A stretch of DNA of 64,000 nucleotides. Source: Anthoceros angustus. Its lineage: Eukaryota > Plantae > Anthocerotophyta. Both the position numbers and the translations under genes were made by a program. Of the stretch, positions 1 through 10,800 are shown piece after piece; within the stretch, counting starts at the first letter, position 1; each line of letters starts with the position of its first letter. The notes beneath the pieces are model-generated. The model did no database searches and was not told where the DNA came from. It was given only the letters and a program-made list of their open reading frames with translations. Location: positions 954,954 to 1,018,953 of the forward strand of contig MU008182.1 of assembly GCA_010909165.1 (NCBI GenBank). Direction: 5' to 3'.

Positions 1-791
1 CTGGCCTCACCTTCATCTACATACCCGCATCCAAACAACAGAGAAAAAGAGACCAGTATGGACCAACCACCATTCCTCGTAACCACAAAACAAGACAGTG
101 AACTCCAAATACACATACCTCCCGTTGAGTCGGCGTGAACTTCCAGGGCATACCATCCGCCACATCCGCATTAAACTGCACTACCAGCTCCCTACCGAGA
201 GACACATTCACAAACCCTATCGATTAGGGTACGCCGAGCCTTCCCCCCACAAATTCACTCCCCTCCACAGCATCCAAGGCAGCAGCAGGAATTCACCTGA
301 CCGGCGCGGCGGAGGCTTCAGCATCCTGCCTTGCAATCTTTTCCTCCACTGTCTGCAAGCAGCCACTGAGCGGATGAACCAGTTCCTTTGCCACGACAGG
401 ACCGGAAACCCATGGGCACAGCAAATCCTTCATGTCACAACCAGCTCACCTCACGCCGCTTCACAGTCCCCCCATAACCAGTGGCCTGGCAGAACTTCCG
501 GTACAGCGGCACGGAAGCGTACGTGCATCCCACCATAGCCACAACCAAGGCGGTGAGATACATCAGCGTTCCCTGCGAATTTTTCTGCCCCGGATGTGCC
601 CTGGCAGCAGCCCCATTTACAAAATTCCTCCTCAGAGCTGGGCTCCCAGGATCCCCTCCAGCCTGCGAGCTGAACCTACAACCTCCCCCTGCCCCTGCCA
701 CTCCAGCCTTGCACTCCGCTCCCAAAATCCACCCTCGTCGAGCACCCGCATCCAAACCCCACCACACCCTTCGACCGCAATGCCGCAACAT
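1..791 (-). CDS. COX11: Cytochrome c oxidase assembly protein COX11, 5' part (exons ~791-450, ~352-298, ~193-118, ~18-1; gene continues beyond the window)
   Basis: Exons encode YLTALVVAMVGCTYASVPLYRKFCQATGYGGTV, TVEEKIAR and RELVVQFNADVADGMPWKFTPTQREV, which are COX11 hallmarks. Introns are GT-AG. The Arg-rich N-terminus from ATG 791 resembles a mitochondrial presequence. Confidence 0.92.
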
Positions 792-1496
792 TCTCCCACT
801 CCAGCTCCGCACCTTCCCCTGTTCCGCGCATCAGCTCTCAGCTCCCCTCGACTCGAGCTACTCCTCTTGTCAATCCATACCCATCGAGATCAAGCCAGGA
901 TCAACAAGCAAGCAGCAAAAGTCGAAATTTCTCTGAATCGCATAAAATCGACTAACAGTAACTCGTTCCCGCTCCCGAATTAGGGCAGCAATACATTCAG
1001 ATGCTTTCATCTTCAATTTGTCTGAGTGCGAAGCAGATTCCTTCCACCGTGTGTAATAAGGACAACTGTGGATTGCACAGAAGAGAGCGAAAATGGAAAA
1101 GGACAGCATTGCAGGTAACCGAGAGATGCTGTCCGGAGACGATGTGAATCAAAACGACACAAAATGCATTAGGCAATTGAGGCAAACAAAGCATCGTGAA
1201 CGAAAGAGAATTTTACACAACCGTCAGCAGAAGTGCAGACGCAGCGCTCCGGACGTGGAATGCTGGCCAAGTTCTCCACATTCGGCTTCTAGGTGCAAGA
1301 CATTCGACATTCGGCAAGCGACTGCTCGAACTTGCTGACGGGGGAGAGTGATCTGCTGTCGCAGCAGCAGCGAAAGAACCAGCATTGTACAAGACAGGAT
1401 CTAGCCGGCATCACACAATGACCCCAGCCGCGGAGGACATCAGCGAATTGGGTTTCAAGCGCGCGAGCTTGAAGGGAAAGGACTAAATTCAATAAT

Positions 1497-2464
1497 CTAA
1501 TTCCCGGGGACGAATTTGGTGGCATAGGCCCAGGCGTTGTTGTTGGAGGGGTCGGCCAGGTGGTCGAGGAGGTTCTCGATGGGGCCCTTGCCGGTGACGA
1601 TGGCCTGCACAAAGAAGCCAAAGGCGGAAAACTGGGCCAGTCTTCCATTCTTGATCTCCTTCACCTTGAGCTCGGCGAAGGTGTCGGGGTCGTCGGCGAG
1701 GCCCAGGGGGTCGAAGGCGCCGCCGGGGTAGAGCGGGTCGGTCACCTCGCCCAGGGGCCCGCCCGCAATGCGGTAGCCCTCCACCGCCCCGATCAAGATC
1801 ACCTGCACGGCCAGCACGGCCAGGATGCTCTTTGCGTGGATGAGAGCCGGGTTGCCCAGGTAGTTGAGCCCCTCCTCGGAGAAGATGACGGCGCCGGCCT
1901 TGAACCACACGGGCTCCTGGATGGGCACCCCGTACTTGGCCAGGATCTCGGGGGTCACGATCCCGAGCGTTCCCAGCAAGGCCCACCGCGAGTGGATCAC
2001 CTCCAGCTCCCGGTTCCTGGCGAACGTCTCGGGATCAGACGAGAGGCCTGCCGTGTCCCAGCCGTAGTCGCCCGGGAACTCGCCCTTGAGGTAGCTCGGG
2101 GGCTCGCCGGAGAGCGGGCCGAGGTACTTGGGCCTGTCGGGCCCGTACCTGCGCAACACACCATTCACGATTCATTCCCACGAGAATCATTCATTCTATC
2201 AATCCATCAATCAATCAAACAATCAAACAATCAAACAATCCCGCCTTGCCGGGCCGGCTGCATTGCATCCCACTGGAATGCAATTGAGAAGGGGGCGATG
2301 GAGTACCAGATGCTGTCGGACTTGGAGGCCTGCGTCTTGCGCATGGTGACCCTGGCGTCCGCAGCCCTGCCGCCGTTCACCTTCCTGGAGAGCTCGGAGG
2401 GCGCCTTCAGCACGGCCTGGCCGGCGAAGGTGGCGCTGCTGATGCATGCCGAGACGGCGGCCAT
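1497..2464 (-). CDS. Lhcb: Light-harvesting chlorophyll a/b-binding protein, major LHCII type (exons 2464-2307, 2148-1497); mature protein has no Met or Cys
   Basis: Transit peptide ends VTM|RKT. WYGPDR trimerisation motif is split by one GT-AG intron. Contains [30 protein letters not shown] and DHLADP. Confidence 0.97.
2195..2240 (+). repeat. Short (AATC/AATCAAAC)n microsatellite in the Lhcb intron
   Basis: Sequence tcaatccatcaatcaatcaaacaatcaaacaatcaaacaatc. Confidence 0.8.
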
Positions 2465-2708
2465 GGCTGCTTCCGCCGGTGCCCGGGGAGGAGAAGAGAG
2501 CAGGCGACGGAGACAAGTCAGCTGGAGGACGCGATGCCGATGTCCGTGAAATCACTGCTCGCACAATATATATGTTTGGTAGGCGGGCGGGGCGCGCGGC
2601 CAGGTGCATGCACCGACGGTAATCGGCAGGGCCCAATCGGGGGCCAGGATTCCCTCCAGCGCTTCAACTACGGTTCGGGCGACTGACTGCGGGTTACTTC
2701 TGTGGCGT

Positions 2709-2728
2709 ACGTGCATTGAACCTGGATA
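2709..2728 (+). promoter_or_regulatory. UPE-box-like element (putative SLIM1/EIL3 sulfur-deficiency site) upstream of Lhcb
   Basis: ACGTGCATTGAACCTGGATA versus recalled consensus AGRTWCATTGAAYCTRGACR, with an unbroken CATTGAACCTGGA core about 245 bp upstream of the ATG. An extra TEBS (AYGWAYCT) match ATGAATCT lies at 2982-2989. Confidence 0.6.
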
Positions 2729-3488
2729 GGCGAGGCGACAACATAAGCCTGCACCAACGCTCCTTCATGTTGCATCGCCTGTGAGCGTCTAAGGGGGCTG
2801 AAGTTTTAAGGCTTGAAGGACTCGACCACTTCAATTTGGCAGCATTAGCTCTACTCTATGTAAGCCAGTTCCACCACACTAAAAAGGAGGAGATATGTTT
2901 GAAGTTACATTGGATAAGGTTCGGTGTGAAGATAATGTCCTTGAACAAGTATAGTCTTGTCACCTCTTACTGTGCAGTAAAATGAATCTGTAGTAGCCTC
3001 AAGGTTCTATTTTTTCAGTTTATGGAAACATTGATGGGTAGTGTTGGAGTTGTGGGGTACAGGATCCGAGAAAGAAGGAGAGGAGAAGGAGTCTATGCGA
3101 CAAAGATCTGTATGATTCAGATTAAATTTATGTCTCGTTATATGTAGAAATGTAAACCTTCAAAAAAATAAGAAGGCGGTGATTAATAAAGGTTTACCTA
3201 CAACAATAACAATCAAATTTCATGCACATAAGTTGCACACTTGCTTCCTAAAATGGAATTCTTTTCCCATAGTCATCTCTAAATGTATATACTTATATCA
3301 AATAATTGTATTTCCTACACTTTTCTGTACAAAACAATTTGTTACATCAAGTTTTTGTAGTACTTAAATCGATTTTGGGACGATTTACTGGAAACAAAGA
3401 GATGAGATATAACAGCCCATCTTCTATACTATGTATTGCTAAAGAGAGTTTCATTGCTAAAGGCACCATTACCCTATCTAACCTCATT

Positions 3489-4781
3489 TCAAGTAGTAAA
3501 GATTATTTCAAGTAGAAGCTTTACGAAAAGGTCCAAAGGATCTTCCGATATAGTAGATAGTTCTAAATAAAATTTCATATATATACCATTAAATCTTGTT
3601 TGATCTTCATGAGTTTTCAAGCGCAACATATTTAACAATTCAGCTCTCATAGAATCCAAATCAGTTTGTTGTCCGTCATGCAATAGGTAGTTTTGTATTT
3701 TTGCTAGCAATTCAGTTCTTTTGAAAAGGAAAATTTTCATTCTCCCCGCCAAATCAAGTCCATCAGGACCGAAATCCATTGACATCTCATCATCATCCTC
3801 GTCATCATCATCATCATCGTCGGCATCATCTGTATCGTCATCATTTGTATCATCATCATCATCATCGTCGGCATCATCTGTATCGTCATCATTTGTATCA
3901 TCATCATCATCATCGTCGGCATCATCTGTATCGTCATCATTTGTATCATCATCATCGTCGGCATCATCTATATCGCCATCATTTGTATCATCATCATTTG
4001 CGTCTTCATCATCTTCATCATCATCATTTGCGTTGTCATCATGTGCGTCGTCATCATCTGCATCGTCATCATTTGTGTCGTCATCATTGGCATTGTCATC
4101 ATCCGCATCAAATGCGAGCCTCAAAATTACACCATTAGGATCAAAATCCATTGACATCTCGTCATAATACTCGCAGTCATTATCTGCATAGTCATCATCT
4201 ACATCGTCATTATTTGTGTTGTCATGAACAAGGTCGTCATCATCCGCATCAAATGCGAGCTTCAAAATTACTCCATTAAGATCCAAATCCATTGACATCT
4301 TGTCATGATGCTCGCCGTCATCATCTGCATAGTCATCATTTGCATCATCATCATCCGCCTCCTCATCATCTGCGTCCTCATGAGCGAGGTCATCATCATC
4401 CGCATCCCCATCATGCTCGCCGTCATCCTCTACATAGTCATTATCTGCATCTGCGTCCTCATGAGTGAGGTTGTCATCATCCGCATCGTCATCATCAGCG
4501 ATATCATCATCATCATCCTTGATTGACATTTCTCCATCATCCTCCATTGCTATCTCATCATCATCCTTGTCATCATAGTTTTCGATTAACATCTCTTCAT
4601 TATGCAACCATGGCATGAGACATGTCTCGCGAAATAAGTGAGGACATGTATTTATTTGTGGAATCTCTTTCGCTAGTTTAATGTTCTCTCTTGAGATAAA
4701 ATTTTTCCTCTCTTTAGTCTCATTATATTTATATAGGGTTGTTGTCAATTTTTCTTCTCCTGGTGGAACATTAAAATCCAT
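3489..4781 (-). CDS. Orphan, extremely Asp-rich protein (430 aa from ATG 4781), intronless
   Basis: Uninterrupted 1293-nt ORF with a central poly-Asp region built from repeated units (MSMDxDxNGVILxLAFDADDD; TNDDDTDDADDDD) and non-repetitive N- and C-terminal regions. No recognised family; expression unknown. Confidence 0.5.
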   Translation of the reverse strand: MDFNVPPGEEKLTTTLYKYNETKERKNFISRENIKLAKEIPQINTCPHLFRETCLMPWLHNEEMLIENYDDKDDDEIAMEDDGEMSIKDDDDDIADDDDADDDNLTHEDADADNDYVEDDGEHDGDADDDDLAHEDADDEEADDDDANDDYADDDGEHHDKMSMDLDLNGVILKLAFDADDDDLVHDNTNNDDVDDDYADNDCEYYDEMSMDFDPNGVILRLAFDADDDNANDDDTNDDDADDDDAHDDNANDDDEDDEDANDDDTNDGDIDDADDDDDTNDDDTDDADDDDDDDTNDDDTDDADDDDDDDTNDDDTDDADDDDDDDEDDDEMSMDFGPDGLDLAGRMKIFLFKRTELLAKIQNYLLHDGQQTDLDSMRAELLNMLRLKTHEDQTRFNGIYMKFYLELSTISEDPLDLFVKLLLEIIFTT

Positions 4782-4928
4782 TTCGTGGACGATGAAGCAG
4801 CCAAAAGCCAACTTGCGTTCAAATGAACTTAAAGAGGTATGTGCAGATAGATCTCACACACAGAAGAAACTAGCGCCCGTCGCACTGCAAAGCAACAAAG
4901 CTGCCATGCCCAAATGTCATGGTCAGCA

Positions 4929-5420
4929 TGTAGGCTGTTGGCATCACAGGTCAAAAATGAACGGTCAAACCACTAGCTATAGGCTTGGCAAAGACTACTG
5001 CCTACAATAGGCCTAGAGCCCGCGAACAGAAAAACGGGCTTGGAGTTTGTGTCCTCTTCACCGGAATGCGACCCCAAGATGTTGCAAAAGAAAGTTTAGC
5101 GAAGAAGTATGGCTGCCTCTTTATTAGACAAACATCAACAGTCCACTTAGCTTGGAGTGTTGAGCTACATATATAGCCTATGGTGTCCGCCACCTCTCGC
5201 TATTGCATACTGCTTAGCTCTATGGAGCACGCGCCAAGGTAATATAACTATTTAGTCCTTGGCCTTTGGCAATAATGCCTGCTTGGAAATAATCCTTTAT
5301 TTCCTTGGCCCTTGGTAATGATGAGACTCATTACCTATTTCCTTGGTCTTCGACCCACGTTTATATTGTTTATGGCTAAGTTAATGTTACAAGCTTAGTT
5401 CTAGAGCCAAACTTATAACA
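4929..5420. mobile_element. Possible solo LTR
   Basis: Starts TGTA, ends TAACA, flanked by CAGCA/CAACA (5-bp near-TSD, one mismatch). Internal TATA-like site and short TCCTTGGCC repeats. Confidence 0.25.
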
Positions 5421-6848
5421 CAACACCTAGTGTTAAAAATAATGATCTTCTCACCTCCTTTTATATCCTTCAAGCTCACCCCGTATAAGCAATTACTAAT
5501 TGTAAGAATACATATAATCATATATCTATTTAACTACCCATTAAGGCAGTTTCTTCTTCTGAAATTGCATGCCACCACATGCAGCCATGCTTGCAAATAT
5601 GCAAACAATTCACCAGGCAGATACTATATGTAGCTTTTATTTTCACTTGTTACTTTTTTCAGTAGAACCTATAAAGGTAAGATGTTTTTGTTTCACATCT
5701 CTAAAGTATATTCTCTATTTCATGGTGAAGGGAACTTAATGTGATCTTTGGGACCTAATTTTGGAATATCTAAAATAGATTGGATAATCTATCTCTATTT
5801 CTTTTTGAGTATTTATTATAATTAATTAATTAATTAATTGATCATTTACAAGAATACCACCAAAACAGCAGATGAAAGGCATGACCACATCCTTCCAGAG
5901 CTGTCCTCACTCAAAATTCTATATTTTATGTTTTAAATAATTATTTTGAAATTTATTTATAAAATTTAATATTATTTTTATAATAATTATCTATAATTTT
6001 TTGAAAATTTAAATAAATATAAGTTCGCGCTCAACAAATTGTTTTAGAATAGCTTAGTTCACCCCGGAGATCTTGGCTTTTGGCTTATCAACAGGACTCA
6101 TGGGCAGCATTACCACGTTTGCATCCTAGAACTAGCACATGCTTGAATTCCTTACCTACCGCTTGAACTTCTCAATGGCTTCTCTCTCTTGTTTCAAATA
6201 CTTACCGGTTGAACTACTCTCTCGGGGCCAACTTACTTTTGACTTGGGTGACCAGGTGGTGCAAATTTGGTGGTAATAAACCCTCCCCAATATAGTTTGT
6301 GAGCATGTCATCGTCAACCCTCTGGGCTGGGCGGCGTAGGGATTCGTGATTGCCAAGGTTTACAAGTACACCCCATGCATGAAGGCCATGCTTTCATTCC
6401 CCTTACTATTGAGAACGTGAATGGACTTCATGGTTGGGGTGTGGTTGGGCTCAAGTTTTGAACAAAACCAAAATCGAGTCACACCAATATTGCTTCAAAC
6501 AAGTTCATGTATTGAACCATGGTTGCTTGTATGGTATGTATGAATTACAGTTTCAACCAACCATGGGCTCAGACCAAAACTTCCCCCTTTTATCGAGTTT
6601 GGCATGAAAACTGATTTGAAGTTAAAATTCGTATATAGTACAAGTAAAATAATTAATCTAAGTAAAAAAAATTTCTTCTTCTTTTACTACTACCAAGCTT
6701 AAGAAAAAATCATTTGTGTTAAGACGGTTAAGTTTGACTCAGGTTCCATTACGTACGAGATAAAGTTTCGTGACCGTAGTTCATGAGCTGCATTTGAACA
6801 AACTTTGTCCATCGCCCTGCTGAGGGCGTTGGCAAATGCTGTTTGGAG

Positions 6849-6935
6849 GATGACTTTGAATGCGGGAGATGCTGTAGGATGACTTCGAATGCGGGAGACG
6901 CTGAAGGACGACTTCGAGTGTGGGAGACGTTGCAT
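6849..6935 (+). repeat. 3 x 29-bp tandem repeat
   Basis: GGATGACTTYGAATGCGGGAGAYGCTG repeated three times with substitutions. Confidence 0.85.
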
Positions 6936-7007
6936 CTTCAGCTGTGGTGGTAAGTAGGCCCTTCCTTACTCTTGACTACGACATGTTGGGGGCGGTAGAC
7001 AGCTTCA

Positions 7008-7147
7008 CGGTAGACAATTGTGGGGGCTAGTTCCCCTTAACCTGGGCCTTGTAGTGGGTTGTTCCCAACCACCATGGTAGACAATCGCGGGGGATAATTA
7101 CCCTTAGCCTGGGCCTTGTAGTGGGTTGTTCCCCACCACCACGGTAG
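7008..7147 (+). repeat. 2 x ~67-bp tandem repeat
   Basis: GGTAGACAATyGyGGGGG...CCTGGGCCTTGTAGTGGGTTGTTCCC occurs twice. Confidence 0.85.
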
Positions 7148-7267
7148 GGATGGGACCTTTTTAAATTGCAATCCTTGCAATTTTTATAAAGTCTCTATTC
7201 CACTATTATAGTAGGTGGTCAAATTAGCTTATATATCTTCTAGAGGTAACTTGCAATATTTTTTTTT

Positions 7268-7460
7268 GTCCAAATAGCCTAGGCCAAATGGACTAACATT
7301 TATAAGAACTTCCTGATTAAGCATCCTGAACTTAGATCGGGACTTAAATGAGATTCCTAAAGGGAGTGGGTGCCCTTGGTGCAAGTAGCTTAGGCACACA
7401 ATGGTACAAGTTGATAAGTACCAAGTCCCATGTTCCACTAAATAAAATTCTTCTTCTTCT
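7268..7460 (+). mobile_element. ~190-bp dispersed repeat (SINE-like or LINE 3' end) ending AATAAAA+(TTC)n; copy A
   Basis: Reverse complement aligns with 41811-42033 and 42034-42258 (shared core GTGCCTAAGCTACTTGCACCAAGGG). Confidence 0.7.
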
Positions 7461-7561
7461 TAAATTTATGATAAGAATATTAATTACAAATTTATTTTTC
7501 TTTACTTTAAATCCATGTATTCACACACCACGCATCCTTGATAAGCAAGTTCATACCTAGC

Positions 7562-7690
7562 AACTTTCAACTTGTGTGTCCGAAGATAGTTTCAAACTAG
7601 TGTGCAGAAGATGGTTTCAACTTGCGTTGATGAAGATAGTTTCAACTTTCGTTCATGAAGGTAGTTTCAAACTTCCGTGCATAAAGATAG
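7562..7690 (+). repeat. Degenerate ~25-bp minisatellite (GAAGATAGTTTCAA(A)CT plus variable linker), ~5 units
   Basis: Direct inspection of repeated gaagatagtttcaa units. Confidence 0.75.
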
Positions 7691-7885
7691 AGTGTTACAA
7701 CTTTCTCCGCTTCTAATACACAGCATCCCATGTCCACACCGACATCCCATAAGAAGTAATGTACAACACAGTTTTAAAATGAAACCATCTCTAGTCCAGA
7801 CATAGCCCAACACGTAAAGAGACATGACTTCTGCCATACGGCGTGGACATAAAATGTTATTTGTTCCAACAAAACTTACCCCGCG

Positions 7886-10800
7886 TCAAGAAATTGACGG
7901 CAGCGGAAAGGGCTCTCGCTGGTGAGATTGACGCGATGAAGAGGCTCTAGGAGCTACAGGCGAGGGGACAGACAGAGTAGCCATGGTGTTAGAAAAAGCA
8001 AGTTGCGGCACTTGCAAAGAATTGACGACTGATGAACCAAAAGGGAGCTGGCTGGTCTGAATTGTCGGTATACATGGTACAGACTGCGATGACTGCAGGC
8101 TCTGGGATTGTTCTGGAGCTTTGTGTTCAGGTGGTTCTGAGGATTGGACGGCTTCTGAGCCTTCCACTGATGTTGAGGCTGGGTCCAGTGGGTGATCTGA
8201 AGAAACCGGGACTGGGGTATTAGAAGCAGGACTTGGGACTGGTGATAAAGTTGGGTTACTGGAAAGTGAGCCCTTACCGACGTGTGCCAAAGCTTCTGCC
8301 TTCATCTTGTTGGACCTCGCCGCTTCAAAGTAGGGATCTGCAGCCAAAGCCCGATCAAATGACGCTATTGCAAGATCCCAATCTCCCTCTGCAATGTGCA
8401 GGAGGCCCAGGTTATTGTAAGCTGGTGCGTAGTCGGGACATAGCTCCAGCGCCTTCCTGTAAACAGCATGAGCCTCACTGAAACGCTTCTTTTGCCGGTA
8501 CAGATTCCCCAGGTTTGAAAGAATGGTGTGTACTAGCTCTGGACGAGCAAGAGCAAGGGCCTGTTTATATACGGCTTCAGCACCAGATGGGTCGTCCGAA
8601 AACTGAAGGGCAATACCTGGGAGACAGTAGACAGCGTTCAGTCATATTGATCACAGATGAGGTTGACCCTACGGTTCATTCCTGCTTCTAGTTAACAACA
8701 GCAGCAACTCCTCATATCTCTGCAGGGCATGAGTATGCAAGCATCAACTAGAGTACACGAATGTCACCTAAATTGGACCATGAAACTGGGCAGTTATGCC
8801 GTCTGGCAATTGCCGCTCTGAAGTACTTGAGTGCATCCCCAAATTGTAACGTACATAGTGTATGTAATCCAAGCTGATGCCACGGGACAGCATTGTTTGG
8901 ATCTTCTTCTATTGCCTGCAAATACCCCAGATTTCTGTAAGAAAAGCTGGAAATACAAGAATAGCCCCAACACGTCATCCTTTTGCCAAAGTCACATGAG
9001 CGGATGTATGCTGACCTGGTGAAGACTTTGAATAGCCCGATCTTCTACTTCTTTGAGATCCAAGCCACCTCCCTCAAACGACGCTACAGTTTCATGCTGA
9101 GCCCTGTTAACCATAGCCAAACCGGCCCATGCTAGATGGGGCTGCACGGTCGTAGAGTCCCCTTCTCGTAAAACAGATGCCATTTCATTTGCTGCCCAGT
9201 TGAGCTGCTCAGACTGCTCTGCAGAGCCATCCAGCCGCTCAACATCCCGTAACCGATGAGCAGCGACAGCAAATCGAGTTGACATCCTAGACGGCTCCAA
9301 CTTTGCTGCCTGGAAAAACCCAAAAGTGACGGGATTTAGGGGGCAAGAGAATACAAGATACCATAACCATTTCCAAGAAGAAACAAATCACAAGTGGGAA
9401 ACATTCACTCAACCTAGGAGCTGTAAGTATCGTACCTGTTCCAAGCACTTATTTGCATCCCATATGCTGCCAGATGCTGCATAGGCTGCTGCAAGATTGG
9501 CCCATATATGACCAGCTTTAGGATCATCCTTCACAGCAGACTGCAGACATTGTTGAGCTGCGACAGCCGCAGTGTGCTGCAAGGAGTAGACACCGTTGTA
9601 CCCCTCAGATCCTGCTGCTGTCCCTAAAAGTGCGGTTCACAGACACCGTTCAATATTGGAAACAAGTACAATTTCATGCACGAAACGTTTTTGAGTGAAT
9701 GGTGCAAACCTGAGAAGCCATATTGATGTATCAGAAGGGCCCCATAGTTTACTAAGGCACCTGGGTGAGTTCTTTCCTTCTCCAGCACAGCTTGAAAACA
9801 ACGCGTCGCATTCAAGAGATGTCCACTGCAATTTCAGAATCAACTGTTACGAGCTCCAAAATACAACTTCCCCTACTCATCAAGGACCTTGGCATCCACG
9901 TAGGAACCTCAACGTTTCGTAAGCAGTATATACAGCAAAAACTGAAAAGGCTACCTTTGCATGTACGCGACACCCAGGTTGGCCAATGCATCCAGATAGT
10001 CTGGAACGATACTCAACAGTGCTGAAAAAACAGCCACAGCACTCTGTCCAATGACAACAAACACGTAAGCAAAAAGTTAAGAAATTCAGTACCAACGATA
10101 TTCAGTGTAAAGCAAGCAAGCAAGATCACCTGTACTCGCCCAGTCCTGAGGAGCAGCAGTCCTAAAGTGTTCCAAATCGAAGCTTGGCCACTGTCTTCTT
10201 GTGCCCCTTCCCTTACCTTACTGGTCACACCCTCCAACTCCTCTTTTTTCAACTCTTTCCCCGAATGTCCCAGTTGGACCGTGAGGTTGCTGTGCAACAA
10301 ACACTGCATTCCCAACGGCTGTTATATCAGAAGAATCTACGAAAACATGATTCAAATCTTGATCTTTCAATAGGATTTCCTCTTAGGTCAACTGCATTCT
10401 CTGAATATGGATTCCTTCCACAACTCAGAATCCTAGAGCACCCTACCTCTGCCTGGTGGATCTGGACGAGCTGAAGGAACTGCGCTCTGTTTTGTCCACT
10501 CTCTTCCTCTGACTGCTTAAGGATCTCGGCAGCCTTTTCGAAGTTCGTGGCGGCCTGCCAGGATGGAGAGAGTGTTGTGAACTTGAAGTCATGTACAAGA
10601 CTTTTAAAATACAGTGCTCAACTCACGAAACACTCAAATTGCATCATACCAGAATAAGCCGTGTCTAAGAAAATGCTTACTTTAGCAGGCTGCCCCAAGC
10701 GCTGAAACATGAGCCCCAGGAAAAACTGCGCGTGCGCATTCTTAGGCAGCTTCCGCGCAACATGCATGAGCCCCTGCACAAATTGTAGGACAACGATAAG

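Follow-up and report, generated by a model that had tools for sequence, protein, structure and literature searches.

The promoter of a sulfur-free Lhcb gene of the hornwort Anthoceros angustus carries a conserved pair of cis-elements which, judged from their sequences, are of the EIL/SLIM1 type and represent a palindromic variant of UPE/SEBS, with binding of an EIL protein and a response to sulfur as the predicted properties. Both elements are located upstream of the transcribed region and match SLIM1 motifs defined elsewhere, and their core is conserved and specifically enriched in front of sulfur-free Lhcb genes. We lean towards regarding the stretch from 2595 to 2730 of the analysed window (64 kb of hornwort DNA) as the regulatory core of this LHCII promoter, in which two presumed sites for EIL dimers would act as a switch for sulfur shortage. 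Control of the SLIM1/EIL type had been proposed in a previous sequence-only reading of the window, and such motifs are indeed present, with strong and specific enrichment in front of the sulfur-free Lhcb genes of four to five bryophyte lineages. However, the weight which that reading had placed on a distal 20-mer needs to be shifted, since the deeply conserved part is a proximal near-palindrome at 2600–2615 which includes AGGTGCAT, whereas for the 20-mer, Riccia alone provides a counterpart, which differs at one position of the core.

The gene, its transcript and the two elements

The Lhcb gene consists of two exons on the minus strand and starts with an ATG at 2464. The coding part of exon 1 (2307–2464) encodes the transit peptide and the start of the mature protein, followed by an intron of 158 nt (2149–2306) with GT..AG ends, seen as CT..AC on the plus strand, and by exon 2 (1497–2148, including the stop codon at 1497–1499), whose translation yields 216 residues containing neither Cys nor Met. 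A spliced RNA contig of the same organism (run X2, record 21) covers positions 1860–2144 and 2303–2532 with 0 mismatches, skipping 158 nt at the joint, and defines a minimum 5' UTR of 2465–2532 (minus strand). Because this exact-match contig ends at 2532, both EIL-type elements lie upstream of the transcript, and a TATA-like box (ATATATAT in gene orientation; 2566–2573, minus strand) is present about 34–41 nt upstream of the contig end. The exact-match RNA contigs showed depths of about 11–17, compared to 300–9850 for the contigs of paralogs in the same run; contig depth reflects expression only poorly, but these values are compatible with a conditionally induced gene which is near-silent in ordinary culture. 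The hexamer GAGACA, known as the SURE11 or auxin-response core and tied to the low-sulfur response of Arabidopsis, occurs at 2510–2515 inside the 5' UTR, and because chance alone would yield such a 6-mer about once in 2 kb, we assigned no weight to it. The next open reading frame upstream of the Lhcb gene (3489–4811, minus strand) encodes 440 Asp-rich amino acids with tandem repeats, and because its stop is located at 3489, the intergenic promoter of the Lhcb gene extends over at most approximately 950 bp.

The proximal near-palindrome CCAGGTGCATGCACCG (2600–2615) is composed of two inverted halves resembling EIL half-sites, which overlap by 2 nt and match the tebs half-site AYGWAYCT at 7/8 (ATGCACCT) and 6/8 (ATGCACCG) positions. 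It is situated at about −58 to −73 relative to the predicted transcription start site and about 27 bp upstream of the TATA box. Read towards the gene, it contains the conserved core ATGCACCTGG (2600–2609, minus strand) with a 9-mer common to four promoters, ATGCACCTG, which is the reverse complement of 2601–2609 and corresponds to AGGTGCAT plus one base. The core and two bases beyond it make up a SEBS-like 12-mer, TGCACCTGGCCG (2597–2608, minus strand), matching the SEBS motif WGNAYCTRGACR at 11/12 positions.

The positions previously given for AGGTGCAT (2602–2609) and for a half-site ATGAATCT (2982–2989, plus strand) were correct, and the two fared differently as supporting elements. While AGGTGCAT is trivial by itself, yet part of the most conserved element of the promoter, ATGAATCT lies outside that element. 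AYGWAYCT half-sites occur at chance frequency (12 found in the window vs. 12.25 expected), so ATGAATCT alone carries no weight; its listing as a supporting element amounted to noise, and we rejected a role for it. It is located in an AT-rich stretch which is partly missing from a related hornwort. The G+C content falls sharply near 2800, from about 0.57 to about 0.34. The hornwort with this partial loss (organism B, run X3) lacks 124 nt of distal promoter sequence, with the alignment skipping from 2767 to 2892, indicating that the promoter beyond approximately 2770 is not constrained.

The UPE-box is known from UP9C of tobacco and from LSU1-3, APR, SULTR2;1 and the OAS-cluster genes of Arabidopsis, and it is bound by NtEIL2 and SLIM1/EIL3. 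The UPE consensus given in the sequence-only reading, AGRTWCATTGAAYCTRGACR, is identical to the published one, AG[G/A]T[T/A]CATTGAA[T/C]CT[A/G]GAC[A/G] (PMC9229004; PMC13621327). The distal 20-mer ACGTGCATTGAACCTGGATA (2709–2728, plus strand) was confirmed at its claimed place about 245 bp upstream of the ATG, which is approximately 100 bp upstream of the proximal near-palindrome and at about −167 to −186 relative to the predicted start site, and it is directed away from the gene. Likewise, the claimed match to the consensus at 17/20 positions held, with mismatches at positions 2, 5 and 19 and a contiguous 13-bp core, CATTGAACCTGGA, identical to the UPE-box at 2714–2726. Regarded as a pair of tebs sites, the 20-mer consists of a right half, TTGAACCT, with a 7/8 match and a left half (reverse complement ATGCACGT) with 6/8, which is a poor half-site. 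It also contains a SEBS-like 12-mer, TGAACCTGGATA (2717–2728, plus strand), with an 11/12 match to WGNAYCTRGACR.

Conservation among bryophytes

Orthologs were sought with exon 2 as the query, with the exons searched separately. Sulfur-free relatives were obtained from Nothoceros (a hornwort, transcript only), Calypogeia fissa, Riccia fluitans (one Met), several Sphagnum species and the alga Coccomyxa, while the exon-1 ORF (2234–2464, minus strand) gave no match in the Logan contigs for related hornworts. Two plant Lhcb proteins (P0095 and P0100) were found filed under Salmonella enterica and a Lachnospiraceae bacterium, most likely reflecting plant contamination of bacterial assemblies.

When the 1 kb preceding the sulfur-free Lhcb gene was compared between the hornwort, Calypogeia, Riccia and Sphagnum, ATGCACCTG was the sole 9-mer common to all four, and shared 9-mers appeared in none of 200 shuffled sets of four promoters. 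A fifth contig, from a leafy-liverwort-like assembly (L099), contains CGGTGCATGCACCTG at −410, which is the string of the hornwort in the same orientation. In all five promoters, ATGCACCTG is a short sequence kept between flanks which have diverged beyond alignment. Near-palindromes equivalent to that of the hornwort are present in Riccia (AGGTGCATGCACCT) and Sphagnum (CCAGGTGCATGTACCTGG, which includes one perfect tebs half, ATGTACCT), and Calypogeia has related copies. The earlier reading had named conservation in orthologous promoters as a check on its proposal, and EIL-type motifs are indeed retained across the sulfur-free Lhcb genes of bryophytes.

Three related hornworts share about 90% identity with the promoter; among the differences listed (up to 2659), none falls within 2600–2613, while positions 2585, 2589 and 2614 differ. 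A reading of the conserved element as an SBP/GTAC site was rejected because GTAC is located outside the invariant core. An origin of the promoter from a repeat or transposon was rejected as well because no second copy of it was found within the window. A site II/CCAAT-like 11-mer, AGGGCCCAATC (2628–2638), is common to the hornwort (at −174) and the Calypogeia sulfur-free Lhcb promoter (at −266) and was not seen in the other lineages.

In Sphagnum fallax and Calypogeia, the 3 kb preceding ordinary Lhcb genes do not contain the element. A set of 80 metagenomic Lhcb loci included only two with the element in the 2 kb upstream, namely the sulfur-free ones (L038 and L039); both are from Sphagnum, so no further lineage was gained. 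On the Sphagnum-like contig L038 (around 2040–2060), ATGTACGT takes the place of ATGTACCT as one palindrome half, a variant creating an ACGT core similar to that in the left half of the distal 20-mer. No SEBS-like site was detected in the 2 kb upstream of the sulfur-free Lhcb gene of the chlorophyte Coccomyxa, which is a single case. To our knowledge, chlorophytes possess no EIL proteins.

Riccia fluitans contains two convergent, near-sulfur-free Lhcb copies about 4 kb apart (CM092408.1, around 15.85 Mb; R1flu_004989 and R1flu_004990), which code for one Met in the mature part. The second copy retains every element, but because the two promoters are 95% identical, we counted them as one and regard them as uninformative on selection. 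About 470 bp upstream of both copies, and in the same orientation to the gene as in the hornwort, the 13-bp core of the distal 20-mer recurs with one mismatch (CATTGAACTTGGA). This observation bears on the question of whether the resemblance to UPE/SEBS arose by chance, which would leave especially the 20-mer at 2709–2728 without function. Hunting for known motifs over many windows will yield 17/20 matches somewhere, the half-sites occur at chance frequency, and the promoters of Calypogeia, L099 and Sphagnum contain no counterpart of the 20-mer. On the other hand, a 20-mer with at most three mismatches was found once in the 64-kb window vs. 0.03 expected (3 of 100 shuffles), corresponding to about 0.0005 per 1-kb promoter, and the 13-mer core with at most one mismatch was also found once in the window vs. 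0.34 expected. Matches to the 13-bp core such as that in Riccia are estimated to occur by chance at about 0.004 across the three other promoters. Moreover, the proximal element is kept in all lineages, and the motif enrichment persists if the hornwort is left out. We therefore consider a chance resemblance very improbable as a general explanation and plausible for the distal 20-mer only.

Motif enrichment and candidate binding proteins

The SEBS motif WGNAYCTRGACR was derived from DAP-seq with SLIM1/EIL3 (PMC13621327), and two renderings of the SLIM1 DAP-seq motif differ in showing [T/A] in one where the other has N. In the hornwort promoter, it is matched at 11/12 positions at 2717–2728 (plus strand) and 2597–2608 (minus strand), and there are no 12/12 sites. 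The conserved bryophyte core together with its flank also matches SEBS at 11/12 positions in every lineage, with positions 1–9 perfect, and SEBS-like sites with one mismatch have been reported to be EIL4-responsive in rice protoplasts (PMC13621327). Applying a threshold of at least 11/12, we counted 8 sites in 4 kb of sulfur-free Lhcb promoters (2.0 per kb) vs. 0.74 in Markov simulations, and permuting the motif resulted in P = 0.0007 for SEBS with at most one mismatch, whether the hornwort was included or not. The corresponding values were 0.25 per kb for flanking DNA of the same genomes and 0.07 per kb for the 42.3 kb in front of ordinary Lhcb genes, which contain 3 sites, although only two of the latter control promoters belong to ordinary bryophyte Lhcb genes and the rest to plants from metagenomes. 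The SEBS-like sites are thus enriched about 8- to 28-fold, and this enrichment applies to one gene family, the sulfur-free Lhcb across lineages. Each of five promoters contains two copies of the exact string TGNAYCTRG (2.08 per kb vs. 0.09–0.13 per kb), but the P values obtained with this string are optimistic because it was trimmed from SEBS after the data had been seen. The test to rely on is that with SEBS because this motif was defined elsewhere.

The same sites may be assessed for proteins of another family. The conserved element might be real and yet serve a different factor, for instance a bHLH protein recognizing the E-box CACCTG or a B3 protein recognizing the RY-like CATGCA, in which case its inputs would be light, development or general stress. 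The invariant 9-mer does hold one E-box (CACCTG) in every lineage, CATGCA is part of most palindromic versions, and one or two positions of the core differ from the optimum of angiosperm EIL sites; the core has a C where angiosperm motifs prefer A/T and where position 4 of tebs is W. The tomato SlEIL3-1 motif, for example, is ATG[A/T]AT[C/T]T[A/G]G (bioRxiv 10.64898/2026.10.13.758863). However, 7 of the 10 exact TGNAYCTRG sites are not E-boxes (TGAACCTGG, TGTATCTGG, TGTACCTGG, TGCATCTGG and TGCACCTAG), which favours an EIL-type over a bHLH reading, and CATGCA is missing from the Calypogeia site at −535 and from the hornwort 20-mer. In addition, the conservation runs through CCTRG and therefore past a 6-bp RY site or E-box, and the motif behind the enrichment values is one determined for Arabidopsis EIL3. 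Considering all of these points, control by another protein family appears rather unlikely.

According to the preferred reading as EIL-type control, the promoter contains a pair of EIN3-like (EIL) sites, both apparently built from two inverted half-sites with the core TGNAYCTRG. Most likely, the hornwort EIL protein would bind to both sites as a dimer under sulfur shortage, and this binding would turn on the sulfur-sparing antenna isoform in the same way as SLIM1/EIL3 of flowering plants acts at the UPE/SEBS sites of LSU, SDI, APR and SULTR genes. Only one EIL gene each has been described for Marchantia and Anthoceros angustus (PMC9136324). This single EIL reported for bryophytes must also serve any ethylene-type signalling, which leads to another explanation, namely that the elements are EIL sites but the signal is ethylene/ACC or another EIL input (submergence, darkness), and the sulfur-free product is unrelated to the switching. 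EIN3-type sites are palindromic too, as in the primary ethylene response element of ERF1, and the bryophyte elements share this layout and the half-site core ATG-A-CT with the EIN3/TEIL sites (tebs, AYGWAYCT). In contrast to these, the conserved bryophyte half contains C instead of W as its fourth base, and its flank extends to CTRG; this CTRG(A) flank is closer to the SLIM1-specific extension than to a bare tebs site. Furthermore, the motif follows the sulfur-free isoform and is missing from the ordinary Lhcb promoters examined, and the algal low-sulfur LHCBM9 is regulated by sulfur. Therefore, we regard ethylene or another EIL input as an improbable signal for these sites.

Known systems and implications

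Like the UPE-box, the hornwort 20-mer seems to be made up of two inverted tebs-like halves, with 17/20 matching positions and the identical 13-bp core, and it occupies a promoter-proximal position at a gene whose product points to a function in sulfur shortage. Unlike the UPE-box, the three mismatches of the 20-mer include both key positions of the left half, and the form conserved in bryophytes is a shorter palindrome with the core ATGCACCTG, whose halves overlap by 2 nt rather than 1 nt as in UPE. Moreover, its host is a hornwort and its presumed target an antenna protein. With the SEBS and SEBS-like elements activated by rice EIL4 (PMC13621327), the two hornwort elements agree at 11/12 positions, as does the conserved element of every other lineage, whereas the bryophyte sites drop the terminal GAC(R), showing GGCCG, GGATG, GGTCG or AGAGA instead of a retained 3' GAC, and have C at position 3 where A/T is favoured in angiosperm logos.

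A functional parallel is provided by the low-sulfur LHCBM9 of Chlamydomonas and its Parachlorella homolog (LHCB1, 1779_t), whose expression increases more than 1000-fold when sulfur is withheld (PMC4724957). By analogy, the hornwort gene may likewise code for a sulfur-sparing antenna isoform that stays silent until needed. Chlorophytes use other regulators, and the algal system represents an analogue rather than a member of the family.

In the literature searched, sulfur-deficiency control by UPE/SEBS or SLIM1/EIL3 was not found outside flowering plants (Arabidopsis, tobacco, tomato, wheat and rice), and no paper linking UPE/SEBS to bryophytes or to an Lhcb gene was found; a text search for the conserved strings retrieved only primers and unrelated text. 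The apparently new feature is therefore a shorter palindromic form of UPE/SEBS with the core ATGCACCTG, which would be bryophyte-wide in front of the sulfur-free LHCII gene. The conserved motifs are compatible with EIL-type control outside flowering plants, and such control of sulfur-free Lhcb may be as old as land plants.

If this is true, the link between EIL proteins and sulfur dates back to the origin of land plants, as the element is present in all three bryophyte groups, and sulfur sparing in the style of the algal LHCBM9 would be connected to a land-plant regulator. As a tentative extension, which we regard as possible rather than probable, the single bryophyte EIL would be the ancestral regulator of sulfur status, and an EIL-SEBS regulon for sulfur deficiency would have existed in the land-plant ancestor before the split of EIN3 and SLIM1. 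Its targets would have included a sulfur-sparing proteome programme with the sulfur-free LHCII, which was later lost in seed plants. The gene and its 16-bp element would then provide a concrete target and a defined sequence for asking what the single bryophyte EIL senses, and the element could act as a compact sulfur-responsive switch in bryophyte synthetic biology.
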